NCBI GenBank assembly: GCA_964057225.1 | Contig: OZ059900.1 | Coordinates: 10,044,001-10,108,000, forward strand | DNA: 64,000 nt | Direction of reading: 5' to 3' | Source: Auanema rhodensis | Lineage: Eukaryota; Animalia; Nematoda | In this document: positions 1 to 41,367 of the stretch, piece by piece | How the letters are laid out: each line of letters opens with the position of its first letter | Numbering within the stretch: position 1 is the stretch's first letter | Notes under the pieces: model-generated | The model's database searches: none | What the model was told of the DNA's origin: nothing | Seen by the model: only the letters and a program-made list of their open reading frames with translations | Made by a program: the position numbers and the translations under genes

Positions 1-1419
1 AATGCAAAAGAATAGAGTACAAACGATAAAAACTATATTAATTCTGCAATTGTTGAACAGAAATTGGCTGTTAGCTAACAGTAGTAATGTTATTTTAACG
101 ACCGTGTAGAGGAAGACAAGTTGTACATTGAATTTAAGAAATAAAATGTGTTATGAGTATGTTGATATGCATAATAAAGATAAAGAAATAGAAGAAAAGA
201 ATATGTATAGCTTAGGTTTTAATTTCAAAATTTATGGAAGATTTCTGAAGCGACTCTTGATATCGAAATTATTTCACCAGAAACGCTAACTCTAATTAGA
301 TGATAGTCTTAGCAATGATACCACAGGTTTCACCACCTATCCTTATCCGACAATATAAGATTTATCGTATTTCATTCTCTTGGTAATATATCGTTCGGTT
401 GATTAAGAAAGCTGAAAAGCAAGAACCATGTCCATCAAGATATGATCATTAAAATGTTTTTCCTTTTAAGGATTTTTAATGTTCAAACTTTAACAAATTC
501 AGTTTGTACTAAAAAAAACTCTATTCATTTACTAAATTTGTAATTTTTTTGAATTTTTTTGTTCCCAAATGGTTTCTACTTAGGAAATATCCACAAATAT
601 CAATATATAATACCGAGAAGAGAAATATTTATTTAACCATATGATACTATGTGCAAAAAAGAAGAGAAAAGTTCTCTGTTAGCTTTGAAAGCTCAGGCAC
701 CTACTAAATTTACAGAAATCGAGTGAAACTTCGGTGTTGACTATTTCATAGATATGTGTGAGACCAAGCAATTATAAAGTTTTTATTGCTTGGCTGACCG
801 TTTCAAATTTCTTCTTTGACGTTACCATACTTTTTGTTTCTTTCATTGTGTTATCTAAGAAGATAACTATCAGATTGTATTTTGGTTAACAACGGATATC
901 GCATTTCGTGAAATTTGGACTTTGATTTCATTTTATGTAGTTATAGTTGACAAATATCATGATAATAAATAGAAATTAATCAATAATATCAGTGTAACAT
1001 GAAAATATTATAAAATTTTCAAAATCAAACAATTCTCTCTAATAAAAGAATTGAGATTTTCTGTTAATATTGAGAATATTGTCTTTTGTCCTCACATAAC
1101 TTAATATTTTCAAATTGTCATAAGTTTGCTGCGATTTGCAAGAAAAAAACATTTCTGTGATATGAAGCCACGAGAGACACCCCTTTTTGATATCAGATAA
1201 TAGTTTTCTGCGTGGGTGCCGAAGAAGGCAGAACAATCCAAACCTCAAAAAACTTAATTTTATGAATTCATTCATTACCACTTGCTACTGCTGTTGTCAA
1301 GTTTCAAATACCTTTCTCTCATATATACTCTAAATTCATTTCAACCTTTTGGTTGATTTGGATATATACCAAATTAATATTTCCGAAAAAACTTTCCTCA
1401 AACCTTAAATTTGAATATT

Positions 1420-1820
1420 ATGGATGAATTTCCTTATCTGTCACGTCACCTTTGTAAGTTATGAGATTTAAAAACTTTTATATTAGTTTTACTTGTAGAC
1501 AATCGGAGTGGTTCTCTAATCATTGAAAACCAAGCTCGAGAGGTAGACGAAAAACATTGTGAAATCCAAACTTATCAAACAACACCGCGTGTTACTCAAC
1601 TTTGCATTTTTAATGAAAAGGATTCTGACATGAGTGAGTATAGCTTGTGTGTTCAAACGTTATCAAGTTTTTTCTATTTCATTTCGAAATATCAAGTATA
1701 CTCACTTGTTTAGAACCTTCCCACCAATTTGATATTCAAAAAGAAGCTCCGCCTGTTTATGATGATAGTGATGTTGAAGACGACGATGAAGACGCTTTTA
1801 TACTCTATCAGGCTGTATAA
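1420..1820 (+). CDS. Small 3-exon orphan protein (~91 aa, acidic C-terminus)
   Basis: Hand-spliced at GTAAGT/TTGTAG and GTGAGT/TTTAG junctions: MDEFPYLSRHLYNRSGSLIIENQAREVDEKHCEIQTYQ...PPVYDDSDVEDDDEDAFILYQAV*. The frame stays open across both introns and AATAAA follows. No family recognised. Confidence 0.65.
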
Positions 1821-2258
1821 GTCCACATCCTGGATCAAAATAACAACAAGTAGAATTTTCCAACTTTTTTCTTGAAATGTTTTCATTTAATTTTAATGTA
1901 GAAATTTAATAAAAAATTTGATCTAATATCCTATTTCAATTTTATTTTCTCGGTCGGCGCTTTTGATTGCATATTTATTCCGCCAAGCAATTTCTCAACT
2001 GACAATTTCAACCTTTTCTTCCGATCTTTCAACTGTTCTTCAAAAAATTCTTCAGAATCTTTTCAAATACTATCAGAACAATTTTCCAAACATTGGCGTC
2101 GATTCAAAGGTTATGCGATTTTCATGGATAGAAACAGTGAGATTTTCTACCTAGATAAAGAAATTGATATTTGATCACAATTAGGCTGCAAATCTCATGA
2201 ATGTTTGCAACTAAATTGATTTAAACAAAACTTTTTTTTTAGATTTCAAGTTAAGATA

Positions 2259-2907
2259 ATGATAAATCTGACCCCGTCAACGGTTCAAACAAGTAGCAAC
2301 GATGGCATTCGAATGTTTTCATTTGCCATGTTCTGGGAATATATCAGTCTTAGGACAACGGTATTTCATAGTTTTTGAGAAAACATTCATTTACTATCTC
2401 TTCTCTCAGATTATTTTTTCTTTTTCAACTTTTTTTAAAAATCTTTCAATATTAGAATTTCAGAAATCTTATTCTGGTGTCCTGAATATTCATTATGAGC
2501 AAAAAAAATGAAAATTCTCATCGTAGACGATGTGTTAGTAAGTTGCTTCTATTTAACTTTTTCTAATTTCTTCCTTCTTAGTCGAAAATGGTCGAGAGAT
2601 CACGCATGAAGTCTATCGATTGGGTGAAAACCGATGCGATAATTCATATCCTGGGAAAGAAAGTTTTCTCAAACCTATTGACAAATCAAAAATAGAAGAA
2701 ATTGCTCTACGTGAAGAATATGAAAGTTTGTCTAGATTATTATTTCTACTGAACCTCATTGTACTTTCAGATGGTGATGTTTCATTGTTTTTCGATCGTC
2801 TTGATTTGGATGAAGGCGAAGGAATTGAATTCATGCAGTCGCGTGGTTTTTGACTCCCAGAAGACAACAAAGAGGACATACTGAATGATTGTCGAAGATA
2901 TAATTAA
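2259..2907 (+). pseudogene. Disrupted 3-exon orphan gene upstream of 5S
   Basis: Exon-like segments with splice sites join only if the A8 run at 2501 is frameshifted. There is an in-frame TGA at 2851-2853, after which LPEDNKEDILND..* continues. Copy 2 has the same lesions. Confidence 0.4.
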
Positions 2908-3377
2908 TTGAACTTCCTCTGCTATTTGAAGCCTCACTTATTTTTTTTTGAATTAGGATATTCAATTTTGAGTTCTTTTTTCGGAAAAAAGTTTTTAATT
3001 TATATAATTTTCTATTGTTTTCCAATTTTCTAGTGATTTCTCTATGTTTCTTTCTATCGTTTTCTAATTTTTTAGTGATTTTCAAATGTTTTCAATAAAA
3101 TATTTGTAGAAGCTGTTTAAATCACTTTTGGTTTTTTTTAAGAACTAATCGAATTTGTAAAACTTGAATTAAATCTTGCATTTTCACAAACAAATAGGGT
3201 TCACGTGAACAAAGTGAGAGAATTGATTTCACAGTTTAGAAAGAAAAATATATGGTTTTACCTTCATAACGCGATGATTAATCCAATATCCGGACAGAGT
3301 ATTGCCCAGATGTTTCATTTCTGATACAGCGGTCAGCGAAGTTCACGATTATAACTGCAAAACTAAAGTTTACATTC

Positions 3378-3496
3378 GCTTACGACCATACCACGTTGAA
3401 AGTACGCCATCCCGTCCGATCTGGCAAGTCAAGCAACGTTGGGCCCGGTTAGTACTTGGATCGGAGACGGCTTGGGAATCCCGGGTGCCGTAAGCT
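3378..3496 (+). rRNA. 5S rRNA gene, copy 1
   Basis: 119 nt GCTTACGACCATACCACGTTGAA...GTAAGCT, closely matching nematode 5S, followed by a Pol III T-run terminator. Confidence 0.99.
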
Positions 3497-3561
3497 TTTT
3501 CATTTTGATTTTGAATAGTAGTGAATTAAGGAATACGGTAACTTGAGGTAATTACGTATGT

Positions 3562-3581
3562 GCTCTAGTGATAAGCGGGAA
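3562..3581 (+). promoter_or_regulatory. GCTCTA-N7-GCGSGA motif downstream of 5S / upstream of cargo gene
   Basis: GCTCTAGTGATAAGCGGGAA; same-spacing copies at 8300, 9305, 13864, 22071 and 42961 (-). The 3' half resembles an E2F site. Confidence 0.55.
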
Positions 3582-4033
3582 GATATGTCATCATAACATA
3601 TTCAAATAAATTTTATTTTTATTGATTTTTATTTGTTATTTTAAATTCTACGCACCAATTGCTTAGAACAATGTTTGCAATATTTTCATTCATAATTAGC
3701 AAGAGAAGTACCTAGTGTTAAACAGAATTTGTTATATACGTATGTCTAGTTAAGACATTTAAGAGATACGGTAACTGTGAAAGGGCACCTGTAAATAAGT
3801 AGCTGTAAATTAAAAAAGTTTTAGGCCGGAATAATCGTTATTTCGAATTATTCAAATCTAATCAATATATCTCAATATATTGATTTTTTTCTTAATTGCC
3901 TCCATTGTTTTTTGTTTGCATTTTTTATTTCTTCTCGTTGCAGGTATTGACAACTGCTGCCTTTTTAATTTTTCGTTACTGATTCTCAATCGTAAGTTTG
4001 TTGTTGTTTTATTTATTATTCATCGTATTGAAG

Positions 4034-5034
4034 ATGGACAGATTTGGTTCTGCCGCAGGAAAAGATAATTTAATTGAATTGCTTATGAACGATGCAGAGT
4101 CTGAAAATGCATCTGATTTTATTATTCGAGCATTCGAACAATCAGTCGGGCCGGCTCCCATAATTTTACCTAGAGTTGAGCATTTAGCCTTCTCATTTCC
4201 TCTTGTTGATCGCCCTGCTGATCAATTTGTTTCTCCACCTGTAGGAGAAAGGCTTGAGAATGACATTTTAGACAATTTGGTAGGAGAAGACATCTATTCT
4301 GATTCTGAAGATATGGGAATATATTGGGTAAATATGCTTAAAGTAAGAAATTTCGAAGAATTTTTATTTCTAGGAAGACCCGACACAGGAAGATGAAACG
4401 GTGCCAGAAAATGTCAACGATACATCTATTGAAATACTCGAAGAAGACACGATTCCGCTTTCATCAGTGCTCAATGAAAATATGCCAGGCGAATATGAAG
4501 CACATGATGAAGACAACGGAATTGTAAGTCATTTTTCACTCAGTTATTGAAAAAAACGTTTGTTTTCAGGAAACTATCGACCTTACTGGAGAAGATGCTG
4601 ATAATGATACTAATCGTTTCTCTTTCAATTCTTCGAATACTTTGGTATTCAAGCTTGTAATATAAATTTTTATAATTATTTCATTTTTTCAGAGAAATCA
4701 TTATGATCTGGCTAATGATAATCAGAATATGTTAATTAACCGTGAATCAGATGATGAAAACAACGGGATTGTAAGTCATTTTACTCTCAGTTATTGAAAA
4801 AAATGTTTTTTTTTTGAGGAAACTATCGACCTCACTGGAGATGTTCCTGTACATGAGCTTGCTGATGAAAACCCAATGGAGACGGCTTTAGACATCGAGA
4901 ATAGGGAGAATGTACGCGACTCTGATAATACTGCAAGTCCTATTAGATATAGAACTGTTACGACTATTCTGATGCTGCCAGGTGGTGAAAGAAAGTTTAT
5001 CACTAGCGAAGAACCCGAACTGAATTTGTTGTGA
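4034..5034 (+). CDS. Acidic disordered orphan protein with repeated IDLT (SIM-like) motifs (cargo gene A)
   Basis: Five phase-0 exons splice into one frame: MDRFGSAAGK...GIYW/EDPTQED...DNGI/ETIDLTGED...NTL/RNHYDLAND...NNGI/ETIDLTGDV...KFITSEEPELNLL*. Preceded by a 48-nt 5'UTR exon. The last acceptor is a weak GAG. Confidence 0.75.
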
Positions 5035-6125
5035 GAAAAAATATTGTATTACAAAGATAAGAGCAAGTTGAAATTCTAGGGAAATTCTGATAAAAAGGAA
5101 ATGTTTAAGTCAGACGGTTTTCTATTCATAGACGTCTTTTCTCTAGTGTTTCATCAAGTTTTCTTCTCTAATCTCGTTATACTATTTGTTATTGTTACAT
5201 GTTATAGGTTTTTTGAAATTTTTCAAATGATTGTTTGTGTTGAATGGAATTTTTAATAAAGTTTGTTTGTTGTTTATAACTGTACAATGAAACTATAACA
5301 GTAAATAAATTAAAAAATAACATTTCCCAGGATAAAATATTGAATTATTCGAAATATGCGCTTAATGTGCACGGAAAATATAAACGATAACTATTTGAAT
5401 GAAATTTTCTTTTCTCTTAATATTCTGAAGAATTTGAATTATCTCTGAGATTGATTCTCAATATCCTACAATATCATAGAATAAGAAGTCTATTTCGTAT
5501 ATCTAAGATATTCCTTTTACTCTTCTCTTCATCTGTCTTAAACTTCATCGATTGTGTTATCTAAGAAGATAACTATCAGATTGTATTTTGGTTAACAACG
5601 GATATCGCATTTTGTGAAATTTGGACTTTGATTTCATTTTATGTAGTTATAGTTGACAAATATCATGATAATAAATAGAAATGAATCAATAATATCAGTG
5701 TAACATGAAAATATTATAAAATTTTCAAAATCAAACAATTCTCTCTAATAAAAGAATTGAGATTTTCTGTTAATATTGAGAATATTGTCTTTTGTCCTCA
5801 CATAACTTAATATTTTCAAATTGTCATAAGTTTGCTGCGATTTGCAAGAAAAAAACATTTCTGTGATATGAAGCCACGAGAGACACCCCTTTTTGATATC
5901 AGATAATAGTTTTCTGCGTGGGTGCCGAAGAAGGCAGAACAATCCAAACCTCAAAAAACTTAATTTTATGAATTCATTCATTACCGCTTGCTACTGCTGT
6001 TGTCAAGTTTCAAATACCTTTCCCTCATATATACTCTAAATTCATTTCAACCTTTTGGTTGATTTGGATATATACCAAATTAATATTTCCGAAAAAACTT
6101 TCCTCAAACCTTAAATTTGAATATT

Positions 6126-6526
6126 ATGGATGAATTTCCTTATCTGTCACGTCACCTTTGTAAGTTATGAGATTTAAAAACTTTTATATTAGTTTTACTT
6201 GTAGACAATCGGAGTGGTTCTCTAATCATTGAAAACCAAGCTCGAGAGGTAGACGAAAAACATTGTGAAATCCAAACTTATCAAACAACATCGCGTGTTA
6301 CTCAACTTTGCATTTTTAATGAAAAGGATTCTGACATGAGTGAGTATAGCTTGTGTGTTCAAACGTTATCAAGTTTTTTCTATTTCATTTCGAAATATCA
6401 AGTATACTCACTTGTTTAGAACCTTCCCACCAATTTGATATTCAAAAAGAAGCTCCGCCTGTTTATGATGATAGTGATGTTGAAGACGACGATGAAGACG
6501 CTTTTATACTCTATCAGGCTGTATAA
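6126..6526 (+). CDS. Duplicate of the 1420-1820 orphan gene
   Basis: Same exons and introns, with one P>S change (ACACCG to ACATCG). Confidence 0.65.
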
Positions 6527-7004
6527 GTCCACATCCTGGATCAAAATAACAACAAGTAGACTTTTCCAACTTTTTTCTTGAAAAGTTTTCATTTAATTTT
6601 AATGTAGAAATTTAATAAAAAATTTGATCTAATATCCTATTTCAATTTTATTTTATCGGTCGGCGCTTTTGATTGCATATTTAGTCCGCCAAGCAATTTC
6701 TCAACTGATAATTTTAACCTTTTCTTCAGATCTTTCAACTGTTTTTCAAAAAATTCTTCAGAATCTTTTCAAATACTAAAAGAATATCATGAAATCTCAT
6801 TTAACAAACATCGTATACCAGAACAATTTTTCAAACATTGGCGTTTATTCAAAGGTTATGCCATTTTCATGGATAGAAACGGTGAGATTTTCTACCTAGA
6901 TAAAGAAATTGATATTTGATCACAATTAGGCTGCAAATCTCATGAATGTTTGCAACTAAATTGATTTAAACAAAACTTTTTTTTTTAGATTTCAAGTTAA
7001 GATA

Positions 7005-7653
7005 ATGATAAATCTGACCCCGTCAACGGTTTAAACAAGTAGCAACGATGGCATTCGAATGTTTTTATTTGCCATGTTCTGGGAATATATCAGTCTTAGG
7101 ACAACGGTATTTCATAGTTTTTGAGAAAACATTCATTTACTATCTCTTCTCTCAGATTATTTTTTCTTTTTCATCTTTTTTTAAAAATCTTTCAATATTA
7201 GAATTTCAGAAATCTTATTCTGGTGTCCTGAATATTCATTATGAGCAAAAAAAATGAAAATTCTCATCGTAGACGATGTGTTAGTAAGTTGCTTCTATTT
7301 AACTTTTTCTAAGTTCTTCCTTTTTAGTCGAAAATGGTCGAGAGATCACGCATGAAGTCTATCGATTGGGTGAAAACCGATGCGATAATTCATATCCTGA
7401 GAAAGAAAGTTTTCTCAAACCTATTAACAAATCAAAAATAGAAGAAATTGCTCTACGTGAAGAATATGAAAGTTTGTCTAGATTATTATTTCTACTGAAC
7501 CTCATTGTACTTTCAGATGGTGATGTTTCATTGTTTTTCGATCGTCTTGATTTAGATGAAGGCGAAGGAATTGAATTCATGCAGTCGCGTGGTTTTTGAC
7601 TCCCAGAAGACAACAAAGAGGACATACTGAATGATTATCGAAGATATAATTAA
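7005..7653 (+). pseudogene. Duplicate of the 2259-2907 disrupted gene
   Basis: Same A8 run and in-frame TGA. Confidence 0.4.
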
Positions 7654-8124
7654 TTGAACTTCCTCTGCTATTTGAAGCCTCACTTATTTTTTTTTGAATT
7701 AGGATATTCAATTTTGAGTTCTTTTTTCGAAAAAAAAGTTTTTAATTTATATAATTTTCTATTGTTTTCCAATTTTCTAGTGATTTCTCTATGTTTCTTT
7801 CTATCGTTTTCCAATTTTTTAGTGATTTTCAAATGTTTACAATAAAATATTTGTAGAAGCTGTTTAAATCACTTTTGGTTTTTTTTAAGAACTAATCGAA
7901 TTTGTAAAACTTGAATTAAATCTTACATTTTTACAAACAAATAGGGTTCACGTGAACAAAGTGAGAGAATTGATTTCACAGTTTAGAAAGAATAATATAT
8001 GGTTTTACCTTCATAACGCGATGATTAATACAATATCCGGACAGAGTATTGCCCAGATGTTTCATTTCTGATACAGCGGTCAGCGAAGTTCACAATTATA
8101 ACCGCAAAACTAAACATTACCTTC

Positions 8125-8243
8125 GCTTACGACCATACCACGTTGAAAGTACGCCATCCCGTCCGATCTGGCAAGTCAAGCAACGTTGGGCCCGGTTAGT
8201 ACTTGGATCGGAGACGGCTTGGGAATCCCGGGTGCCGTAAGCT
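8125..8243 (+). rRNA. 5S rRNA gene, copy 2
   Basis: Identical 119-nt 5S followed by a T-run. Confidence 0.99.
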
Positions 8244-8398
8244 TTTTCTTTTTTTCAGAAAAAAAGTTCATGAAATTAGTTATTGATAATCAGATAAGCG
8301 CTCTATTGATACGCGGGAAAATGTTATACTTAAAAAGAAATACTCCAAATGTCATAGTGATTGGAGAAGAAAAGTGCATTTCGGCCGTAAAAGCAGTC

Positions 8399-9050
8399 AT
8401 GGATCCTCTGCAACAGCTAACGGACATAGTTTTTCCGCAAGAGAGTTCGGAAAAGATCCAACACTTCACGTGTAGCCGTTTGTTATGCTATTTGCCCCGA
8501 CAAGTAAGTTTAATTGTTATTTGTAATTATTTCATATCAAATGATCGTAATTTAATGATGAAACCAAACCATTCGAAGCATAATTAGAGTACTTGTAAAA
8601 TCGTTCAAATCTTAATATTGCATTTGTTTGAGGGACTCAACAGGAAATCAGATTGAAAACGGAGCTTGGAGCTGTTCTTCCTGTGAGGTGGCTTTCTCTT
8701 TTCAAGGTAAGCAACACTTTCATACTTATAGAATAAAAGAAATAGAAAGTATAGAAAAATGACTTTTTTATCAATTATTTTCAGTTTTTGAAAACCCCTG
8801 TTCCAAAATTGAATACAGCCGCATTGAAATTCTTATGTCCAACGAAGGACAATGAATGTGTATCGAACTTTAAGCATATTATCCAATTCTCGGGGCTCTT
8901 AGGACAATTTATGAAAAAAAGGTATTTCTATCTATAACCACCTTGATTTTTATGTTATAATTTTAATCTACTTTTTTTAACAATTTTGCATAATATTCTC
9001 AATTTGATAAATAATAAATAAAAAAATCTCATATATTATATTTTAGGTGA
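8399..9050 (+). CDS. Putative multi-exon orphan gene downstream of 5S copy 2
   Basis: ATG after the motif at 8300. Exon-like pieces MDPLQQLTDIVFPQ..., TQQEIRLKTELGAVLPVRWLSLFK and FLKTPVPKLNTAALKFLCPT... are bounded by splice-like sites. The first junction and the end are uncertain. Confidence 0.35.
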
Positions 9051-10295
9051 ATGCATCGCAACTCTGCAAATTGGCAAAATGCGTCGAGTGAAAAGAATAT
9101 TTTTTTTAATCTGTACGTTGTTTTTTTAAATTAGAAATTTCTGTTTTTTATTTTATAACATTTTGTATTTTGTGTACATGAATAAACATTTAATACACAT
9201 CTAAAGATATTTTTTAATCAATAGTATGATATAAGATGTTAATCAATATTATATATTGTTGTTTAAATTAGATGAACTGCTTGCTCCATTTAGAAAAACT
9301 GTTTGCTCTATTAATACGCGGGAATATATTATATTTTAAATAAAAAATACTCCAAATGTAATAATGATTATATTTCCAACTATTATTTTTTCTTATATAT
9401 ATATATAGCTAGTTAGATACTTTTTTTTCGAAATTATTGTTTAAAATTTGATAACAACATGACAGTTCCAAAGCCATTGATGACAGAATATGAGGAGACT
9501 AGAAGGTATTTCAAAGAAATTATAGATAACAAGGATTAAACATAGTGAGTTGTAAACTATATGCTATATTCTAAAACTTTTTGCCTTTGTCTTGTGAATT
9601 ATGTTATTTGTATTCAAATAACTTGATTTTATTCTGTGAATATGCTACGATTTGTTTTTTTATTTTTGAATTAGAACTTGTTTAAGGTTATGATGACCGC
9701 AAGACTTTTCATAATTTTTCCAATTTGTGATGTTATAAAGAAAATAAAAATTTTATAAATGGTTAAAGCTTTTATATGTTTGACATACCATTATATTTCA
9801 TTTGAAATGAGAAATTTGGGCGTTTTCCTGAAAATGTATTTTAGAGAGTTGTGGTGTACGGTATATTATATTTTTTTTAAAATATTTCCCTTCAAATGTT
9901 TCTTTTTATCTATATATTCATATGGAACTATATATTAAAAATATATTTGTATATAAGTTGATGAAGGGGGGAAGAGCACCACTACTGACATGAGTTCATG
10001 AAGATCACAGGTACTCGAAAAAAAATTCTGAAAAAAATTTTTTTTTGTGATTTTATATAAAAACTTTATATTTCTCATTATTATTATTATTATTATTATT
10101 TATATATATTTAATAATTTAAAGATAGAAAAAACAAAAAATAAACCAATTGACCAAATCTTACCCCTCACGTAAGTCATTAATGACCGGTACACCGAAAA
10201 TAGTCAAATCTGACACTTGTGGTCAAAAGAGCGAGTGCACTCGTATGAAGTACGATACATAATCTCAATGTTTATGTTTCTGACGACGTTGCAGT

Positions 10296-10484
10296 ATCGC
10301 TTCTCGGCCTTTTGGCTAAGATCAAAGTGTAGTAATCGTTCTTATCGAATTAACCTTCGATATGTGTTCCATTGGTTCACAATAAGGTTAACCGATTTTT
10401 GAGACCTGAGGTAGATGCTGGCTTGCTAGCTCCATCTCACGGGTCGACCCGCTCTTGCACTGCTGGCGGGAACGGCCCATCCCC
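10296..10484 (+). ncRNA. U2 snRNA gene (variant immediately 3' of the branch-site sequence)
   Basis: ATCGCTTCTCGGCCTTTTGGCTAAGATCAAAGTGTAGTA, stems IIa/IIb, Sm site GATTTTTG, stem III and stem IV loop TTGCACTG. Reads GTAGTAATCGTT instead of canonical GTAGTATCTGTT. Confidence 0.93.
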
Positions 10485-12811
10485 TTTGGGGGGAATAATC
10501 GTTCTTATCGAATTAACCTTCGATATGTGTTCCATTGGTTCACAATAAGGTTAACCGATTTTTGAGACCTGAGGTAGATGCTGGCTTGCTAGCTCCATCT
10601 CACGGGTCGACCCGCTCTTGCACTGCTGGCGGGAACGGCCCATCCCCTTTGGGGGGAATAATCGTTCTTATCGAATTAACCTTCGATATGTGTTCCATTG
10701 GTTCACAATAAGGTTAACCGATTTTTGAGACCTGAGGTAGATGCTGGCTTGCTAGCTCCATCTCACGGGTCGACCCGCTCTTGCACTGCTGGCGGGAACG
10801 GCCCATCCCCTTTGGGGGGAATAATCGTTCTTATCGAATTAACCTTCGATATGTGTTCCATTGGTTCACAATAAGGTTAACCGATTTTTGAGACCTGAGG
10901 TAGATGCTGGCTTGCTAGCTCCATCTCACGGGTCGACCCGCTCTTGCACTGCTGGCGGGAACGGCCCATCCCCTTTGGGGGGAATAATCGTTCTTATCGA
11001 ATTAACCTTCGATATGTGTTCCATTGGTTCACAATAAGGTTAACCGATTTTTGAGACTTGAGGTAGATGCTGGCTTGCTAGCTCCATCTCACGGGTCGAC
11101 CCGCTCTTGCACTGCTGGCGGGAACGGCCCATCCCCTTTAGGGGAGAATAATCGTTCTTATCGAATTAACCTTCGATATGTGTTCCATTGGTTCACAATA
11201 AGGTTAACCGATTTTTGAGACCTGAGGTAGATGCTGGCTTGCTAGCTCCATCTCACGGGTCGACCCGCTCTTGCACTGCTGGCGGGAACGGCCCATCCCC
11301 TTTGGGGGGAATAATCGTTCTTATCGAATTAACCTTCGATATGTGTTCCATTGGTTCACAATAAGGTTAACCGATTTTTGAGACCTGAGGTAGATGCTGG
11401 CTTGCTAGCTCCATCTCACGGGTCGACCCGCTCTTGCACTGCTGGCGGGAACGGCCCATCCCCTTTAGGGGAGAATAATCGTTCTTATCGAATTAACCTT
11501 CGATATGTGTTCCATTGGTTCACAATAAGGTTAACCGATTTTTGAGACCTGAGGTAGATGCTGGCTTGCTAGCTCCATCTCACGGGTCGACCCGCTCTTG
11601 CACTGCTGGCGGGAACGGCCCATCCCCTTTGGGGGGAATAATCGTTCTTATCGAATTAACCTTCGATATGTGTTCCATTGGTTCACAATGAGGTTAACCG
11701 ATTTTTGAGACTTGAGGTAGATGCTGGCTTGCTAGCTCCATCTCACGGGTCGACCCGCTCTTGCACTGCTGGCGGGAACGGCCCATCCCCTTTGGGGGGA
11801 ATAATCGTTCTTATCGAATTAACCTTCGATATGTGTTCCATTGGTTCACAATAAGGTTAACCGATTTTTGAGACTTGAGGTAGATGCTGGCTTGCTAGCT
11901 CCATCTCACGGGGACTCTCTGGTCGACCCGCTCTTGCACTGCTGGCGGGAACGGCCCATCCCCTTTGGGGGGAATAATCGTTCTTATCGAATTAACCTTC
12001 GATATGTGTTCCATTGGTTCACAATAAGGTTAACCGATTTTTGAGACCTGAGGTAGATGCTGGCTTGCTAGCTCCATCTCACGGGTCGACCCGCTCTTGC
12101 ACTGCTGGCGGGAACGGCCCATCCCCTTTGGGGGGAATAATCGTTCTTATCGAATTAACCTTCGATATGTGTTCCATTGGTTCACAATAAGGTTAACCGA
12201 TTTTTGAGACTTGAGGTAGATGCTGGCTTGCTAGCTCCATCTCACGGGTCGACCCGCTCTTGCACTGCTGGCGGGAACGGCCCATCCCCTTTAGGGGAGA
12301 ATAATCGTTCTTATCGAATTAACCTTCGATATGTGTTCCATTGGTTCACAATAAGGTTAACCGATTTTTGAGACCTGAGGTAGATGCTGGCTTGCTAGCT
12401 CCATCTCACGGGTCGACCCGCTCTTGCACTGCTGGCGGGAACGGCCCATCCCCTTTGGGGGGAATAATCGTTCTTATCGAATTAACCTTCGATATGTGTT
12501 CCATTGGTTCACAATAAGGTTAACCGATTTTTGAGACCTGAGGTAGATGCTGGCTTGCTAGCTCCATCTCACGGGGACTCTCTGGTCGACCCGCTCTTGC
12601 ACTGCTGGCGGGAACGGCCCATCCCCTTTGGGGGGAATAATCGTTCTTATCGAATTAACCTTCGATATGTGTTCCATTGGTTCACAATAAGGTTAACCGA
12701 TTTTTGAGACTTGAGGTAGATGCTGGCTTGCTAGCTCCATCTCACGGGGACTCTCTGGTCGACCCGCTCTTGCACTGCTGGCGGGAACGGCCCATCCCCT
12801 TTGGGGGAGAA
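10333..12811 (+). repeat. Tandem array of 15 units (163-174 bp) of 5'-truncated U2 snRNA
   Basis: Units start TAATCGTTCTT at 10333, 10496, 10659, 10822, 10985, 11149, 11312, 11476, 11639, 11802, 11975, 12138, 12302, 12465 and 12638. Each ends TCCCCTTT(G/A)GGGG..GAA. Confidence 0.98.
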
Positions 12812-12960
12812 TAATCGTTCTTATCGAAATAACTCGGTATGTGTTACCATCATAACACCGTGAGTAATGCTAAATTCCAGACATAGTATTACCCAGATGT
12901 TTTATTTCTGCCAGAAGTTGCACACTTTCTGATACCAGGGTCAGCGGAGCTCACTACACT
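12812..12960 (+). other. Degenerate U2 stem-II copy fused to the 5S upstream module
   Basis: TAATCGTTCTTATCGAAATAACTCGGTATGTGTT..., then CATCATAAC..GTGAGTAATGCTAAA..CAGAC.TAGTATT.CCCAGATGTTT...GGTCAGCG, homologous to the sequence upstream of all four 5S genes. Confidence 0.8.
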
Positions 12961-14363
12961 AAGTTTTCTCAAACCTATTGACAAATCAAAAATAGAAGAA
13001 ATTGCTCTACGTGTAGAATATGAAAGTTTGTCTAGATTATTATTTCTACTGAACCTCATTGTACTTTCAGATGGTGATGTTTCATTGTTTTTCGATCGTC
13101 TTGATTTAGATGAAGGCGAAGGAATTGAATTCATGCAGTCACGTGGTTTTTGACTCCCAGAAGACAACAAAGAGGACATACTGAATGATTATCGAAGATA
13201 TAATTAATTGAACTTCCTCTGCTATTGGAAGCCTCGCTTATTTTTTTTTTGAATTAGGATATTCAATTTTGAGTTCTTTTTTCGAAAAAAAAGTTTTTAA
13301 TTTATATAATTTTCTATTGTTTTCCAATTTTTATGTGATTTCTCTATGTTTCTTTCTATCGTTTTCCAATTTTTTAGTGATTTTCAAATGTTTACAATAA
13401 AATATTTGTAGAAGCTGTTTGAATCACTTTTGGTTTTTTTTAAGAACTAATCGAATTTGTAAAACTTGAATTAAATCTTACATTTTTACAAACAAATAGG
13501 GTTCACGTGAACAAAGTGAGAGAATTGATTTCACAGTTTAGAAAGAATAATATATGGCTTTACCCTCACAACGCGATGATTAATCCAATATCCGGACAGA
13601 GTATTGCCCAAATGTTTCATTTCTGATACCACGGTCAGCGAAGTTCACAATTATAACCGCAAAACTAAAGTTGAAGTTCGCTTACGACCATACCACGTTG
13701 AAAGTACGCCATCCCGTCCGATCTGGCAAGTCAAGCAACGTTGGGCCCGGTTAGTACTTGGATCGGAGACGGCTTGGGAATCCCGGGTGCCGTAAGCTTT
13801 TTCATTTTGATTTTGAATAGTAGTGAATTAAGGAATACGGTAACTTGAGGTAATTACGTATGTGCTCTAGTGATAAGCGGGAAGATATGTCATAAAAACA
13901 TATTCAAATAAATTTTATTTTTATTGATTTTTATTTGTTATTTTAAATTCTACGCACCAATTGCTTAGAACAATGTTTGCAATATTTTCATTTATAATTA
14001 GCAAGAGAAGTACCTAGTGTTAAACAGAATTTGTTATATACGTATGTCTAGTTAAGACATTTAAGAGATACGGTAACTGTGAAAGGGCACCTGTAAATAA
14101 GTAGCTGTAAATTAAAAAAGTTTTAGGCGGGAATAATCGTTATTTCGAATTATTCAAATCTAATCAATATATCTCAATATATTGATTTTTTTCTTAATTG
14201 CCTCCATTGTTTTTTGTTTGCATTTTATTTGTTTTTTTTTTTGCATTTTTTATTTCTTCTCGTTGCAGGTATTGACAACTGCTGCCTTTTTAATTTTTCG
14301 TTACTGATTCTCAATCGTAAGTTTGTTGTTGTTTTATTTATTATTCATCATATTGAAGATGGA
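12961..14363 (+). repeat. 5S cassette, copy 3 (5'-truncated; includes downstream promoter and 5'UTR)
   Basis: Near-identical to 2661-4038; identity ends just after the cargo ATG (GAAGATGGA). Confidence 0.93.
13680..13798 (+). rRNA. 5S rRNA gene, copy 3
   Basis: Identical 119-nt 5S followed by a T-run. Confidence 0.99.
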
Positions 14364-15815
14364 TACATCTTCCTCTGATGACTCAAGCATAGAAGACATT
14401 CTGGAGAACGTGGCTGCAATTTGTGATCCTACAGTAGGAATTGCTATTATTTGTAATTTCTTTATTGATTATTTTGAAGATGGATACATCTTCTTCTGAA
14501 GACTCTGATACTGATAGCATTCTCGAATATGTTTTTGGATTCGCAAATCGGATAATTGCTGATGATACATCAGAAAGTGATAGTGATGAAAATGGCGTCG
14601 AACATTCAGATCCATCATTCTGCGAACTTTCTCAGCCTGATGAAAACAGAGTAGCAAACGGTGTGCGGCATGTGTTCGAGAATGCTCAATTAGCTCGTTT
14701 CAATAATGAGACACGTGAGATTGAGTTAACTTCCCCTTTTCCTGTTGCTGTAGAGAATGGATCTCAATATCGTCAGGTAAACTCTTTCAAGTTGCAATAA
14801 ATTATTCATCATGTTTTCAGCAAATATTGGCTTCTGGGCAGAAAATTGAAGAATCTCTCAACAATTATTTCTCTAAGTTGGCGATTGTCGATCAGATTTG
14901 TGTTGAGCAGTTCGAAGAGGAACAAACAGCTTCTTTTCCTCTCAGAGCTTTGAAGCGAACCTGCATGTGTGATTTCCCTGGAGACTCCGAGTGTTCAATA
15001 TGCAAAAAGAAACTTTCTGATTTGGCTTCTTTGTGTGATTCGGCGTTGGATGTCATGGATCAGATCTATGATTGTTTGGTTGAAGGAATCACATCTACTA
15101 TGATTCCTATCTCGCTAATATGCCTTGCTGGAGAAAAGTTGGAGAGGATTATCAAATCAAATGAGAATTTCGAAAGTAGATCTGTGCCAAACAGTTCTTT
15201 GTATAGAATGGTAAGAATTACTTTTACAAATAGTGACTGTCAAATTGTTTCAGATATATCGTGATGAGCTTGCTGATAATAATCCGAATTCTACAGTCGT
15301 ACGTATATTTCCATTTTCCTGTTAATGTTTCTGAATTTGCAGACTGAATACATATTTCAAAGAATTTGCAATAGACATTCCCAATTCGTAAGTTTCATAT
15401 TGATTAACTATAATATTTGTTTGTCATTTAGCAAATAGCAAACATTGCTGAAGAACTGTCTATAATTGGAAAGACACATGAAAATGCAACAGAAAAATCT
15501 TCACGCAAGGATATTACGCAGAATAACAAAAAGAAAAAAGGACTTGTCAAACAATCTAACAGATCGCCTGCAGGTGGTAGTGTCAGATCGAGGATAACTA
15601 AAGAAACCAGCAAAAATAATACTCTGAAAGATTCTCCTGCTTCTCGAACCCGATCCAAGAAATGTAAAACCCCCAATTGTATTGATTCTCCTGCTTCTAG
15701 AACTAGATCGAAAAAGAGTAAAAAAATAAGTTCAAATGAAAAAGGCAAAGATTCGAAAATTACAGTAATTAAAAGAAAAAGAAAAAGTTTGGATGGTTCT
15801 CAATTCATATACTAA
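14359..15815 (+). CDS. Orphan protein with acidic N-terminus, CxC-x7-CxxC cluster and basic SPASRTRS tail (cargo gene B)
   Basis: Six phase-0 exons in one frame: MDTSSSDD..DPT/MDTSSSED..YRQ/QILAS..CMCDFPGDSECSIC..YRM/IYRDELADNNP../TEYIFQ../QIANI..SPASRTRS x2..KRKRKSLDGSQFIY*. Confidence 0.8.
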
Positions 15816-16446
15816 GCCAGATTTATTTGATCTCTATTGTTTTATCAATTTTAATCCTCTAATCTTGTTTTACACAAAGTTTTAATTGTATATTAGAGGT
15901 TTCTCAAATTTTTAAAAAGAATTACATTTGTTTAATAAATATTTTAGTAGAAGATTATTTGTTCTTTATCGCGTTGCAAGAAAATCAGAAAAGTGAATAA
16001 AACAAAATATATTTCGGAGAATACGGTATCAAAGATTGAAGATAGTCTGAACTTATAAACAATAACAATTCGTATAAATAAACACCACATATTGTTTTCA
16101 ACGGATAAAGGTATGTGACAGATAAAACAAGAATTTTGAGATACGGTAGCATAGAAGTGGCACATGTAAATAAGTAACTGTGAGTAAATAAAGGATTAGG
16201 CGGGAATAAAGTTGATTTTAAGTTGTTTAAACGGAATATATAAGATATTATATTGACTTATTTTATTAATATTAATTGCTTTGATTGTTTTTTAGTTGTT
16301 TTTTATTTGTTTTTATTTTATTTTTTATTTCTTCTTGTTGCAGGTATTGACAACTGCTGCCTTTTCAATCTTTCGTTACTGGTTCTTAATCGTGAGTTTG
16401 TTGTTGTTGTTTGTTGTTGTTTTATTTATAATTCATCATATTGAAG

Positions 16447-17726
16447 ATGGATACATCTTCTACTCATGACTCAGGCATGGATGACATCCTGGAGAACGTG
16501 GCTGCAATTGGTGATCCTACAGTAGGAATTGCTATTATTTGTAATTTCTTTATTGATTATTTTGAAGATGGATACATCTTCTTCTGAAGACTCTGGTAAT
16601 GATAGCATTCTCGAATATGTTTTTGGATTCGCACATCGGATAATTGCTGATGATACATCAGAAAGTGATAGTGATGAAAATGGCGTCGAACATTCAGATC
16701 CATCATTCTGCGAACTTTCTCAGCCTGATGAAAACAGAGTAGCAAACGGTGTGCGGCATGTGTTCGAGAATGCTGAATTAGCTCGTTTCAACTATTATAA
16801 ATGGGATGTTGAAATGACTTCCCCTTTTTCTATGTATGAAGAACAAGCAGTGGAAGACCGTCAGGTAAACTCTCTCAAGTTGCAATAAATTATTCATCAT
16901 GTTTTCAGCAAGTATTAGCCTTTTGGCAAAAAATGGAAAAATCTCTCAACAATTATTTCTCTAAGTTGGCGATAGTCGATCAGATTTGTGTTGAGCAGTT
17001 CGAAAAGGAGCAAACAGCTCCTTTTCCTCTCAGAGCTTTGAAGCGAACCTGCATGTGTGATTTTTCTGGAGACTCCGAGTGTTCAATATGCAAAAAGAAA
17101 CTTTCTGATTTGGCTTCTCTGTGTGATTCGGCGTTGGATGTCATGGATCAGATCTATGATTGTCTTTTTGAAGGAATCGAATCTGATATGATTCCTTATT
17201 CGCTAATATGCCTTGCTGGAGAAAAGTTGGAGAGGATCATCAAATCAAATGAGAATTTCGAAAGTAGATCTGTGCCAAACAGTTCTCTGTATAGAATGGT
17301 AAGAATTACTTTTACAAATAGTGACTGTCAAATTGTTTCAGATATATCGTGATGAGCTTGCTGATAATAATCCGAATTCTACAGTCGTACGTATATTTCC
17401 ATTTTCCTGTTAATGTTTCTGAATTTGCAGACTGAATACATATTTCAAAGAATTTGCAATAGACATTCCCAATTCGTAAGTTTTATATTGATTAACTATA
17501 ATATTTGTTTGTCATTTAGCAAATAGCAAACATTGCTGAAGAACTGTCTATAATTGGAAAGACACATGAAAATGCAACAGAAAAATCTTCACACATGGAT
17601 ACAGACGATGTACTTACTTTCAACAATCAGCTTGGAAGTTCTACCAGACATAAGACTATTGCGCCTATTTTCTTGGGCACAAAGCAGTGTATTACTAGTG
17701 AAGTACCAGAACTGAGTTTGTTATAA
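16447..17726 (+). CDS. Paralog of gene B with a gene-A-type C-terminus (cargo gene C)
   Basis: Highly similar to gene B up to EKSS (~17591), then switches to ..STRHKTIAPIFLGTKQCITSEVPELSLL*. Confidence 0.8.
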
Positions 17727-18181
17727 TCAAAAAGATGGTTATACAAAAATTTGAACAGTTTTACATTGATTTATTGAATAGGAATTGTTTGATCACTAGT
17801 GTTTTATCAATTTTAATGTTCTAGTCATGTTTTACCTTACGTTTTAAATATATGTATCCGGTTTTCATAATTTTTTTCATTTTTCTCAATGAATATTTCA
17901 AAAATTCATTTGTTTTTATGGTTTTTTATATGATTTTTTTAAAATAATGAAAAGAAAATTGTATTTTGAAAGATTAAGTTTTTTGGCTTTTGCCTTTTTC
18001 TAATTTTTTAGTACATTTTTCCGTAATACATACATACATCTTTCAAATTATTATTTTTTTCTTTTTTTCCGATTTCTAATTGTGTTATTGAGTTCCGTGT
18101 CTTCTAATGTATTTAGTTTTTTATAGCTCAAAACAGAATAGTTGTCTTTGTATATTAAAATATGTTTTTTACTATAATGTT

Positions 18182-18312
18182 TCAGTTATTCACTTTAAGA
18201 ACTCAAGTTACAACAGTTGACAACATGATGATTAACTTCTAATCAGTTATTCACTTTAAGAACTCAAGTTACAACAGTTGACAACATGATGATTAACTTC
18301 TAATCAGTTATT
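18182..18312 (+). repeat. Perfect 61-bp tandem duplication
   Basis: TCAGTTATTCACTTTAAGAACTC...CTTCTAA occurs twice, plus a partial third start. Confidence 0.95.
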
Positions 18313-22853: not shown

Positions 22854-23623
22854 TTAGTTTTAAAAGAGTTAATCTTTTCAATTTTTTTTTCAGTCATAGT
22901 ATTTGTTTATTTTTTGATAATAGACGGCATGGATCGGATCCCATGAATCATATAGACGAAGAAGAACTATTTCTTGACTGAGTTATATTGAAATTGTTAT
23001 TTTGCTATTTTGTAATGATTTCTGAATGAATTTTATTCTTCTTTTGTTGGAAAATAATTGAATATACATTTAAAACAGAACTTTCAATAATTAAAACAAT
23101 AAGAATAAGTAAATATCGAATTTGACAGTCTAACAGAATTTTTTATGAGATACAGTAATTGGTTATAAAGTTGATAATTGTTTTCTTTTGGAAATATTCA
23201 TTAGAAATGAACTTTCAGGACATTCTCAATCGAGAACCTGTAGTTCGTTTCTTGTATCATTGATTTTTGCTCTGTCATATATTGTATTTTAACATCAAAT
23301 AGTATAACATCTTGGTGTAATGGTTGTATTCCAGGTTAGTTGATAAACTCTCCTTGGATCATTCTTCTCCAGGTAAGTTACAAAAATAAAAATATTCACA
23401 ACTCTCTCTCTCTCTCTCTCTCTCCATCTCTCTCTCTCTCTCAAAACCACACTCAATTGCAATATGTCCTTCCTACTTCATCATGTATTCTCTCTATATA
23501 TACTGAATACCTTATATCAGCTTCACAATCCTAGATTCTGGTGTATACAACGATTTCCTCCATTTTGCGGTTAATTATCGTACTTATCACCTGATTGATG
23601 AGAATTAAACAATATTAATATGA

Positions 23624-23696
23624 ACATAGTAGTCTAGTGGTCCGAGTATTGGACTGCATTCTACACGGCCAAGTACAATCCCTTTCTGCGTTTTTT
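23624..23696 (+). pseudogene. Degenerate tRNA-like segment in left foldback arm
   Basis: A-box-like TAGTCTAGTGG, GAGTATTGGACTGCA (similar to the tRNA-Cys anticodon arm), degenerate B box AGTACAATCCC, then T6. Confidence 0.45.
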
Positions 23697-25482
23697 AAGA
23701 AAATCGATAGCAAATCGAAAATCCAAAAAACGCCCGGATGGATTTTAAACAAGAAAAAGTGTTTATTTTGGTATTTGAAAGCTGATATCTCAGTTCAAAC
23801 TCAATATTTTTGAATTTTAATTGAGTCCTTCTGTAGTTCTTATTCATCTCTTTTCGCTCACAGAATTTTCAAATACTTTCTCTTTTGGTTTGAAAGTTAT
23901 AGCTTCATGAATATGAGACATAAAGCTTAAACTTAGACTTTGAACTGCTCTATCTCTTTAACTATTAAGAATTTCAACAATTTTCGATCGGATTCACAAC
24001 CTACGTACTGAGATCTATCGAATGAACTGTCTATATTGAAGTTTGGAGCACTTTGAAATTTTGAAAATTAATGAAATTAGCCATTTTCAGATTTGAGAAA
24101 TGAATTTTTCGAGTTTTTCAACTTTTAAGAAGATTATACGATAGAGTTAAACGTGCTGATTTCAAATTTGAAAATCCCGATTTTCAAGTTTCACTTCTGA
24201 AGGAGTTATGAGACTTTAAAGTTGTTGACGTTGAGTATTCTGAAGGATATATCTCCGTTCAGACGAATTTTCAGAAATTCGCAATAAGCAGAATCTACTT
24301 CTACAAGTTTGATTTACTTATGTGATGAATTTCAAAGCATTTTCTTAAATTTTTTAGTTTTTGAAGAAATCATCCAATTTCATGTACTCCCCCCTTACCT
24401 ACTTTTCGACCGAAAACATCCGTCACCCTAGAAATATTTTGAAAATTTCTAATTTTTTTGTTAATTATATGATATCAACTATAACGAATTAAAGGTTTAG
24501 AGACGAAACAACGTAAAGATTGCTCTTCTCATACTTGGAATCTTAGTTTTTCATTATATTCTCCTTTGTGATACCTTTGAACATCAAAACGAGATTGCCA
24601 ATACATTGGAAGATGAAACAAAGATAATCTTAGAATATATATCTGAGTTCATATCACATAGTTAACTATGACATATAAATAACTTCAAATACTATAATTA
24701 TCTAAAACTCTTCTGAACCTATAAAAGTAAAAAAACTTCAGAGTAGATGGTTTATCGATCGATTTTCAGTGAAAAAGTAGGTAAGGGGGGAGTACATGGA
24801 ATGGGATGATTTCTTCAAAAATCAAAAATTTCAAGAAAATGCTTTGAAATTGATCACATAGGTAAATCAAACTTGTAGAAGTAGATTCTGCTTATTGCGA
24901 ATTTCTGAAAATTCGTCTGAACGGAGATATATCCTTCAGAATACTCAACGTCAACAACTTTAAAGTCTCATAACTCCTTCAGAAGTGAAACTTGAAAATC
25001 GGGATTTTCAAATTTGAAATCAGCACGTTTAACTCTATCGTATAATCTTCTTAAAAGTTGAAAAACTCGAAAAATTCATTTCTCAAATCTGAAAATGGCT
25101 AATTTCATTAATTTTCAAAATTTCAAAGTGCTCCAAACTTCAATATAGACAGTTCATTCGATAGATCTCAGTACGTAGGTTGTGAATCCGATCGAAAATT
25201 GTTGAAATTCTTAATAGTTAAAGAGATAGAGCAGTTCAAAGTCTAAGTTTAAGCTTTATGTCTCATATTCATGAAGCTATAACTTTCAAACCAAAAGAGA
25301 AAGTATTTGAAAATTCTGTGAGCGAGAAGAGATGAATAAGAACTACAGAGGGACTCAATTAAAATTCAAAAATATTGAGTTTGAACAGAGATATCAGCTT
25401 TCAAATACCAAAATAAACACTTTTTCTTGTTTAAAATCCATCCGAGCGTTTTTTGGATTTTCGATTTGCTATCGATTTTCTT

Positions 25483-25555
25483 AAAAAACGCAGAAAGGGA
25501 TTGTACTTGCCCGTGTAGAATGCAGTCCAATGCTCAGACCACTAGACCACTATGT
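25483..25555 (-). pseudogene. Degenerate tRNA-like segment in right foldback arm
   Basis: Minus strand TGGTCTAGTGGTCTGAGCATTGGACTGCATTC...AGTACAATCCC...T6. Confidence 0.45.
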
Positions 25556-26274
25556 TCATATTATTATTGTTTAATTCTCATCAATCAGGTGATAGACACG
25601 ATAGGTAACCGGAAAATGGAGGAAACCGTTTTATACACCAGAATCTAGGATTCAAGGAAAGGGAAAGCTGTTATGAGGTATTCATTATATCAGAGAGAAT
25701 ACATGATGAAGTAGGAAGGACATATTGCAATTGAGTGTGGTTTTGAGAGAGAGAGAGAGAAAGAGAGAGAGAGGAATAGAGAGTTGTGATTATTTTTATT
25801 TTTGTAACTTACCTGGAGAGGATATGATCCAAGGAGAGTTTATCAACTAACCTGGAATACAACCATTACACCAAGATGTTATACTATTACATGTTAAAAT
25901 ACAATATATGACAGAGCAAAAATCAATAAAGACAAACTGTATTTGTTATTTCAAACAACTTTTGTCAGAAGAATCTTGGTCGTTTTTTATATTTTTTAGG
26001 AATAAAAATACTTTTATTAGTGTTTTCAGAAGAGATTTGTATTTATATAATGTTCTAATCAAATACATTGGTACAATACTATTTATTCGTAACGATTCGT
26101 AAAACAGCATTATCATATCAAATGCTTATCTCAATTTCGTCTGGTATTTCACATTAGCAATATAATAACATCGCAGAAATGATTCATCCATTGTAAGCGC
26201 TATGTCTGCTGCTAATTTCGTCAAGTTAACGTATATATATATGAAGAGAGAAGTAAAGAAAGAAAGAATCGAAG

Positions 26275-40885: not shown

Positions 40886-41367
40886 CTAAAGAGAATCTTC
40901 GAATTCAGCTTTATTATTGTTGTTGTCGACAACATGATCTTTCTCATTAGGGTATTCGTTAAAATCGGATGAAGGCGAGTTGTTATGAATAGATGCAGAT
41001 AAGTGAAGAGGTGGAACATCATTTTCAAAATTTAGTACATTGTCTTCGGGGTCCACGTTCTCTTTTTCATCTGAAGGTTCGATCGTAGTGGTACAACTCT
41101 GAATTACTATTTTCTATTGATAAAAATAGCAATTCCACTTACTTGTCTAGTATAATGAAATTGAGGTTCGATCTTCTTATAAAGAAGATTAGGAATATCG
41201 TCTCTCATAGTAGTGCAAGGATTGAGCCAGTATGGATGAATCCGAGTACATCTTGGACGACGTTCAGGCCTGGGAGAAACAACTGAATTTCTATCAGGAG
41301 ATAACTGAACAACGAGGTCTGGCCGTTCCTTCAAGATGGATGAAGACACTGTCTCATTTGAAGACAT
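40886..41367 (-). CDS. 2-exon disordered orphan protein (~145 aa) with KEN box
   Basis: MSSNETVSS...HYTRQ, intron 41142-41099, then SCTTTIEPSDEKENVDP...EDSL*. Phase-0 splice keeps the frame open. Confidence 0.7.

Follow-up and report, generated by a model that had tools for sequence, protein, structure and literature searches.

Solitary, identical 5S rRNA genes and mosaic duplications in a cluster of lineage-specific genes of Auanema rhodensis

Genes for 5S ribosomal RNA (rRNA) are the textbook example of a homogeneous tandem array, and in nematodes the array is classically tied to the spliced leader gene SL1. A stretch of 64,000 nucleotides of the nematode Auanema rhodensis (contig OZ059900.1, positions 10,044,001 to 10,108,000, hereafter the window) holds four 5S rRNA genes that are dispersed among protein genes, and the question arises what these genes do there. 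They may be the vehicle of a mobile cassette that swaps and spreads cargo genes, or the anchor at which duplicated segments recombine; the original prediction for this locus, made from the letters alone, had offered both. Our analysis supports the anchor and does not support the cassette. On balance, we favor, with moderate confidence, the reading that the window contains a young, locally duplicated cluster of lineage-specific genes with embedded solitary 5S units and a U2 small nuclear RNA (snRNA) array, which has been reshaped by recombination at 5S.

The four 5S genes were all recovered where they had been predicted. Each scored 107.5 bits against the Rfam model RF00001 (gathering score, 38), with model positions 1-120 covered and a run of five to six T residues following the gene, which places all of them in this family. 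In the alignment, the copies were identical to one another over 119/119 positions. Self-BLAST of the window showed that each gene stands alone and has unique flanks; the distances between them, in which protein genes lie, are 4.7-30 kb. As had been anticipated, no SL1 leader was found within 3 mismatches in the 64 kb, nor was there any SL1 or SL2 hit with Rfam; thus, the classical 5S-SL1 unit is absent from the window.

The DNA around copies 1 to 3 is duplicated (Table 1). By self-BLAST, positions 845-3506 matched 5551-8253 at 98-99% identity (41 substitutions and a 39-bp indel), 2661-4038 matched 12961-14363 at 96%, and 7407-8253 matched 12961-13808 at 97.4%, while the overlap of copy 4 with the other copies was limited to 43016-43207. 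The shared tracts accordingly measure 2662, 1404, 849, and approximately 190 bp, and their ends differ in each. The divergence of the tracts spans 0.9% to 3.8%, so that high-identity tracts of differing extent and age connect these nearby loci. The homology between copies 1 and 2 stops 10 nt past the 5S gene (3506/8253), at the breakpoint that had been predicted for the 3' end of 5S, and the homology between copies 2 and 3 likewise stops 10 nt past the 3' end of the gene.

The two sides of the 5S gene were then compared separately. Upstream of 5S, copy 1 differed from copy 2 at 15/717 sites (2.1%) and from copy 3 at 27/717 sites (3.8%). Downstream of 5S, copies 1 and 3 differed at 5/537 sites (0.9%), with one additional 23-bp indel, and the contrast between the upstream and the downstream side for this pair was significant (Fisher p=0.0017). 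In the upstream segment that is common to copies 1-3, copy 3 had 17 private changes, copy 1 had 11, and copy 2 had 4. Copy 1 is thus nearest to copy 2 upstream and near-identical to copy 3 downstream, which means that the relatedness switches at 5S. Copy 1 is a recombinant, whose left flank (Ua-Ub) is of the copy-2 type and whose right flank (box, promoter, and 5' untranslated region [UTR] of gene A) is nearly that of copy 3. The role of 5S as a recombination anchor is supported by this switch, together with the two homologies that stop 10 nt past the gene. Judged from the alignments, these facts fit ectopic recombination or gene conversion in which the identical 5S genes would have served as the homology.

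The signs of a mobile element were sought in the same tracts. The copies do not share the same termini. No credible terminal inverted repeats were found, the reported pairs being AT-rich and 71-83% complementary, and no target-site duplications were present at the junctions 845, 5551, 12961, 3506, and 8253. The 5S copies had no ends resembling those of long terminal repeat (LTR) or short interspersed element (SINE) retrotransposons, and no poly(A). The window contained no open reading frame (ORF) longer than 166 aa, and the Pfam scans of it revealed no domain of a transposase, recombinase, reverse transcriptase, or other mobile element, a lack that the original prediction had already pointed out. 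The mobile cassette is, therefore, not supported.

Approximately 135 bp upstream of the 5S gene (about 130 bp in the original prediction) is common to all copies, and in copies 1-3 this sequence is part of the larger duplications. The upstream module of copy 4 was 78% identical to that of copy 1 at positions -1 to -60 and 70% at -61 to -135, where a 39-bp indel is present, and 49% farther out; unrelated 60-mers in the window are 48 +/- 7% identical. The upstream sequence holds a GGTCAGCGAAGTTCAC block and TTATAA at about -29, features by which it is probably the external promoter of 5S. Each 5S unit would then be a self-contained gene for RNA polymerase III (Pol III), which consists of the conserved 135 bp, the 119-bp gene, and a T-run terminator. 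The last 10 bases or so before 5S +1 vary among the otherwise near-identical copies (3368-3377, 8115-8124, 13670-13679, and 43149-43158); the substitutions between copies 1 and 2 just before +1 are at 8115, 8116, and 8121.

A U2 snRNA gene followed by a U2-derived array sits between 5S copies 2 and 3. The array comprises about 14 head-truncated units with a period of 163-164 bp (173 bp in some), and the Rfam scores of the later units were 60-86 bits versus 147 for the first. Directly after the array lies a 5S upstream module of the copy-4 type, and the copy-3 duplication begins, at the 12960/12961 junction, exactly where this module is cut. U2 sequence is found upstream of a 5S module at a second place as well, namely at copy 4, as a relic that is 27/30 identical to nt 82-111 of U2 (score of 45 versus a shuffle maximum of 29) and that the Rfam covariance model does not detect. 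Upstream of copies 1-3, U2 was undetectable; the local alignment score there equaled the shuffle mean, and the covariance-model scans showed no U2. Since the cut in the upstream module coincides with the start of the copy-2-like piece in copy 3, a U2-linked 5S unit of older date was overwritten, from one nonhomologous end up to 5S. Because the copy-3 duplication starts inside exon 2 of Ub, copy 3 carries a truncated gene fragment.

Table 1. Positions of the 5S units, their flanking modules, and the genes of the cluster in the window
Feature	Position	Strand	Remarks
5S rRNA gene copy 1	3378-3496	+	Rfam RF00001, 107.5 bits; T5 terminator after the gene
5S rRNA gene copy 2	8125-8243	+	Rfam RF00001, 107.5 bits
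5S rRNA gene copy 3	13680-13798	+	Rfam RF00001, 107.5 bits
5S rRNA gene copy 4	43030-43148	-	Rfam RF00001, 107.5 bits
Duplicated segment copy 1	845-3506	+	Holds Ua (ATG 1420), Ub (ATG 2495, stop ~2853), upstream module, 5S copy 1
Duplicated segment copy 2	5551-8253	+	Holds Ua, Ub, upstream module, 5S copy 2; self-BLAST
Duplicated segment copy 3	12961-14363	+	Holds Ub 3' fragment, upstream module, 5S copy 3, box, UTR exon and intron
Upstream module of copy 4	43149-43325	-	39-bp insertion relative to copies 1-3
U2 snRNA gene and U2-derived array	10273-12877	+	Full gene 10296-10485, then 163-bp-period units; Rfam, repeat families D1 and D2
Truncated 5S upstream module, copy-4 type	12838-12960	+	Directly after the U2 array; cut at about -27 (alignments, junction sequence)
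U2 snRNA relic, 30 nt (Sm-site region)	43445-43474	-	Upstream of 5S copy 4
Box (GCTCTAGTGATAAGCGGGA)	3562-3580	+	65 bp after 5S copy 1; adjoining spacer at background identity
Box	8300-8318	+	56 bp after 5S copy 2; 80 bp before predicted ATG 8399
Box	13864-13882	+	65 bp after 5S copy 3
Box	42962-42980	-	49 bp after 5S copy 4; 146 bp before predicted ATG 42815
Fifth box (1 mismatch) and 45 bp	9305-9369 (box 9305-9323)	+	Local copy of 8300-8362; next ORF 26 aa
Gene A	3944-5037	+	5'UTR exon 3944-3991; coding exons 4034-4326, 4373-4523, 4570-4643, 4692-4770, 4819-5037; RNA contigs
Ua, copy 2	6126-6526	+	91 aa; introns 6160-6204, 6340-6419 in RNA contigs
Ub, copy 2	7241-7599	+	89 aa; introns 7284-7327, 7472-7516 in RNA contigs
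Gene B 5'UTR exon	14269-14316	+	48 nt, identical to gene A exon 3944-3991
Gene B coding region	14359-15815	+	Predicted, ~400 aa; acidic N-terminus, Cys-rich middle exon 14821-15210, basic tail
Gene C	16129-17875	+	Tandem duplicate of B including the 5' region from 14054; without 5S and without box
Gene G2	8399-8937	+	Predicted, ~124 aa, 3 exons; GT..AG/ORF model
Gene 4a	42456-42815	-	Predicted, 105 aa, 2 exons; GT..AG/ORF model
Gene 4b	40886-41367	-	Predicted, 145 aa, 2 exons; GT..AG/ORF model

The second module that accompanies 5S is a 19-bp box, GCTCTAnTGATAnGCGGGA, of which there are 5 matches in the window versus 0.05 expected. A motif 50-70 bp downstream of each 5S had been predicted, and it was indeed found at 4/4 copies, beginning 65, 56, 65, and 49 bp past the 5S end for copies 1, 2, 3, and 4, respectively; the fifth box, at 9305, which has no 5S, had been missed. 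Between the independent copies, the box was conserved at 17/19 positions, whereas the 5S-box spacer (45-59% identity) and the post-box sequence (43-53%) were at the background level. The box core is absent elsewhere in the 64 kb, with the exception of that at 9305. This one belongs to a 63-bp local derivative of the copy 2 box region (8300-8362 matches 9305-9369 at 86% in the self-BLAST), and its homology starts at the box and runs gene-ward, not toward 5S. A decayed 5S was sought beside the fifth box, and neither a 5S nor a relic of it was found there.

The distance from the box to the first ATG is 80-476 bp, and a low-depth RNA contig of gene A (3666-3860) starts 85 bp after the box. The right half of the box, GCGGGAA, is present in 4/5 boxes, and we take it to resemble an E2F site; E2F/DP binds a TTTSSCGC/GCGGGAAA core at promoters of RNA polymerase II (Pol II). 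The box forms an isolated island of conservation and a cis element in its own right; most likely, it serves the downstream Pol II gene as a promoter or boundary element. Two other identities were considered for the box. As an snRNA-type proximal element, it bore no resemblance, by eye, to the U2 upstream region; as a relic of the D-arm/A-box of a transfer RNA (tRNA), the resemblance was loose, and ARAGORN found no tRNA.

To what extent the genes beside the 5S units are real and related was addressed with RNA and DNA contigs from 4 public runs, which were mapped on 3510-8120, a stretch that excludes 5S and U2. The RNA contigs showed splicing for gene A as well as for Ua and Ub. The latter two are small genes upstream of 5S, and they lie in the duplicated segment without having been mentioned in the original prediction. 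The RNA contigs carry the copy-1 and the copy-2 variants of Ub (7400, 7426, and 7554), and both Ub copies thus appear to be transcribed. The introns of gene A (3992-4033, 4327-4372, 4524-4569, 4644-4691, and 4771-4818) are all of the GT..AG type, and 5/5 joints were found in the RNA contigs; four of them were seen in both RNA runs, and that of 4771-4818 was seen in run X12, with offset variants in run X10. The coding exon starts exactly at ATG 4034, after a 42-nt intron in the 5'UTR. Gene A encodes an acidic protein of 271 aa in which the motif NGIETIDLTG occurs twice; these stretches presumably resemble SUMO-interaction motifs. The NGIETIDLTG(E/D) stretches each span a duplicated exon-intron module (4496-4566 and 4743-4813, 89% identical). 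A small-RNA gene between 5S and gene A was also considered, and a relaxed Rfam scan of 3497-4033 was empty.

The 48-nt 5'UTR exon of gene A is found unchanged in gene B, which shares its intron as well, and the corresponding exon of C differs at 4 positions. Moreover, 14054-15513 matched 16129-17601 at 90% in the self-BLAST, and the 3' ends of A, B, and C are weakly similar. As judged by these similarities, A, B, and C are paralogs of one family, not swapped cargo. The homology between copies 1 and 3 ends at 4038/14363, five bases inside the ATG exon. The position of the breakpoint that the original prediction had placed at the cargo ATG is therefore correct; however, since A and B are paralogs with a common UTR exon, it corresponds to an exon boundary between paralogs and not to an exchange of cargo. 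The claim that each 5S is followed by a different spliced orphan gene stood in part: no homologs were found with the proteins searched (4a, exon 1 of A, and exon 2 of B), but A, B, and C are related to one another, and splicing was shown for A, while the genes at 8399, 42815, and 41367 are predictions. The RNA contigs of gene A stop at 3967; a branch of the assembly graph (k=31) would be expected at this point if the UTR exon also joins the B exon, in which case B would be expressed too.

Genes B and C differ in a patchy manner. In the predicted exon models, introns differed at 3/269 and exons at 67/843 positions overall, and the divergence was clustered in patches, the largest of which takes in 25 codons at the end of exon 1b and 11 codons at the start of exon 2 (14702-14853 versus 16790-16941). 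In this patch, 36/108 nt differ (nonsynonymous divergence dN, 0.39; synonymous divergence dS, 0.70), and the 44-nt intron between the two exons has a single difference (p=1.5e-5). The window contains no donor for the B or the C version of the patch. The patch could result from conversion by a distant paralog through a spliced template, or from selection on one protein segment.

The proteins of the cluster were compared with public collections. Pfam gave no significant domain in the cluster proteins, a word search retrieved no homologs of 4a and of exon 1 of gene A, and an exhaustive HMMER search of 1.84 billion representative proteins with exon 2 of gene B gave no hit at E<=0.001. The leads from the Atlas for the downstream proteins, which were weakly gag-like and had 65-91 features in common, fell below the recognition threshold and were treated as chance. 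To the extent covered by these databases, the proteins are orphans.

Public metagenome contigs were scanned with the 3' half of the 5S gene, and two soil contigs of another nematode, L001 (1-1149) and L002 (1-1212), were obtained. The 5S gene of L001 is 117/119 identical to that of the window, and it lies in a tandem repeat of about 680 bp with SL1 on the opposite strand. In the 5S-SL1 unit of this soil nematode, the box is absent, and nothing resembles the upstream module. In L002, a variant of the 5S-SL1 unit is longer by an additional insert of about 125 bp. Since a relative with a 5S gene of such identity keeps the classical 5S-SL1 repeat, the solitary arrangement and both flanking modules are derived in the lineage of the window. 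Further 5S loci of A. rhodensis were looked for as well; the metagenome scan gave the other species, and the bacterial-genome and viral collections gave nothing.

Several considerations weigh against the reading that we favor. A single window yields one or two independent events, and the term anchor thus rests on a small n; furthermore, the homology of copy 2 with copy 1 and that of copy 2 with copy 3 have right ends at 5S that are not mutually independent. The DNA contigs, which come from other organism labels (runs X9 and X11), are too fragmentary to bear on presence or absence. Three of the downstream genes, G2, 4a, and 4b, are predictions from GT..AG/ORF models and lie outside the RNA-mapped stretch. 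For the promoter role of the box, the contigs give just the low-depth RNA piece 3666-3860. Finally, 3/3 independent boxes adjoin a 5S, and the sole box without 5S is a local derivative. Because every independent box adjoins 5S, the box may be a part of the 5S unit and not of the promoter downstream.

The last consideration leads to an alternative in which the box is part of the Pol III unit, where it would bind a factor, act as a roadblock, or take part in termination, with the protein genes as mere neighbors in a compact genome. We regard this as doubtful, albeit deserving of consideration. The box occurs in all 3 independent 5S flanks, 49-65 bp past the terminator, with background identity in the spacer and beyond, and the only other place in the 64 kb that has its core is the local derivative; these observations speak for a Pol III element. 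However, the partial copy at 9305 has its start in the box and runs toward the gene, the distance of the box from 5S varies, and the relative with a near-identical 5S has no box. In addition, we know of no such downstream element for 5S genes.

A second alternative holds that 5S and the box together form a portable expression module, in which the active Pol III gene and the promoter or boundary keep the chromatin open, so that new lineage-specific genes arise or survive just downstream. This would agree with the finding that the next downstream gene is co-oriented and homolog-less in 4/4 cases, and with the expression and splicing of gene A. Nevertheless, there are just 3 independent cases, for which co-orientation by chance has a probability of about 1 in 8. 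Gene C has neither 5S nor box, and Ua and Ub are equally orphan-like and yet lie upstream of 5S. The expression module is, in our opinion, unlikely. A broader version, in which 5S left the SL1 array and became a dispersed 5S-plus-box module that lies repeatedly upstream of co-oriented lineage-specific genes genome-wide, and that acts as a recombination hotspot for their 5' ends and as an expression platform, we hold to be quite unlikely.

A cassette of 5S and its flanks that is moved by an unseen recombinase or transposase, and that carries and swaps fast-evolving cargo, is very improbable: although four sites, one of them inverted and 29 kb away, each have a 5S gene with the upstream module and the box, the tracts lack common ends and every sign of mobility sought above, their lengths range from approximately 190 bp to 2.66 kb, copy 3 includes a truncated Ub fragment, the supposed cargo genes A, B, and C are paralogs, and the 5S-box spacers are unalignable between independent copies, which argues that the unit was not recently copied as one piece.

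We return, then, to the reading of a locally duplicated cluster reshaped at 5S, for which the following history can be proposed. Segmental and tandem duplications, which differ in their ends, would have enlarged the cluster. Its identical 5S genes could then have served as homology patches for ectopic recombination or gene conversion between the copies, and the stretches of similarity do begin, end, or change partner at 5S. At copy 3, a copy-2-like piece starting inside Ub exon 2 was pasted over an older U2-linked 5S unit, leaving the truncated module at the end of the U2 array. The box would mark the start of the downstream Pol II promoter, or the boundary between the Pol III and Pol II units.

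Four other repeated features were noticed in the window. A near-perfect palindrome lies at 23259-25927, with 890-nt arms that are 97% complementary and 346 nt apart, and with more inverted pieces flanking it; no ORF with a Pfam domain was found nearby. At 28956-30216, there are approximately 12 degenerate repeats of about 100 bp in a GC-rich stretch (42% GC, with a strong GC skew), which has the look of repetitive, Thr/Ser/Pro-rich coding sequence of the minus strand. A 61-bp unit forms a perfect tandem duplication at 18182-18303, and a cluster of direct repeats occupies 61971-63399 (units of 96-300 nt, 71-98% identical, with spacings of 138, 384, and 517-522 bp).

Segmental duplications shaped by nonallelic homologous recombination or gene conversion at dispersed repeats are known from yeast tRNA genes and LTR repeats, and from the core duplicons of primates, which contain fast-evolving genes. 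The window resembles such duplications in its mosaic tracts of varied ends and ages around a common core, in the switch of relatedness at this core, and in its lineage-specific flanking genes. It differs from them in that a Pol III gene of 119 bp forms the core, in its scale of kilobases, and in that only one or two events are visible.

The classical 5S-SL1 repeat is known from Caenorhabditis elegans, with a unit of about 1 kb. In this species, about 110 SL1 genes lie in a tandem array with 5S (PMC1657053). The 5S gene of the window is the same gene; however, it is solitary, it has no SL1, and there is no similarity between its flanks and the classical unit. For 5S, a linkage with other gene families is reported to be uncommon, and dispersal to be "very occasional" (PMC10946416); for dispersed nematode 5S genes, the literature offered general statements only. 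The window shares with such cases copies that are dispersed and identical with differing flanks and, probably, the linkage to U2, at two places. The difference is the presence of co-duplicated orphan genes and a conserved downstream box, a combination that has apparently not been described previously. Mobile elements that bear 5S sequences include SINE3 and other 5S-derived SINEs, as well as the Cassandra and Ajax terminal-repeat retrotransposons in miniature (TRIM), which have defined ends and 5S-derived promoters inside (PMC10946416). These elements likewise spread 5S or 5S-promoter sequence, to many genomic sites; in contrast to them, the 5S genes of the window are full-length and identical, their flanks are external, and kilobases of unique upstream DNA were co-duplicated. 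What is new here is a derived and dispersed 5S organization with conserved flanking modules inside a fast-changing cluster of orphan genes, a variant of the known 5S dispersal.

In this window of the A. rhodensis genome, the link between 5S and SL1 is broken, and solitary, identical 5S genes that stand among young genes appear to reshuffle the neighboring promoters and 5' exons. If this is a local matter only, the locus is an ordinary segmental-duplication cluster. If it holds genome-wide, it would offer a concrete and testable account of how lineage-specific genes turn over under the influence of a housekeeping Pol III gene, and the 19-bp box, where Pol III and Pol II units border on each other, would count as a new cis element.

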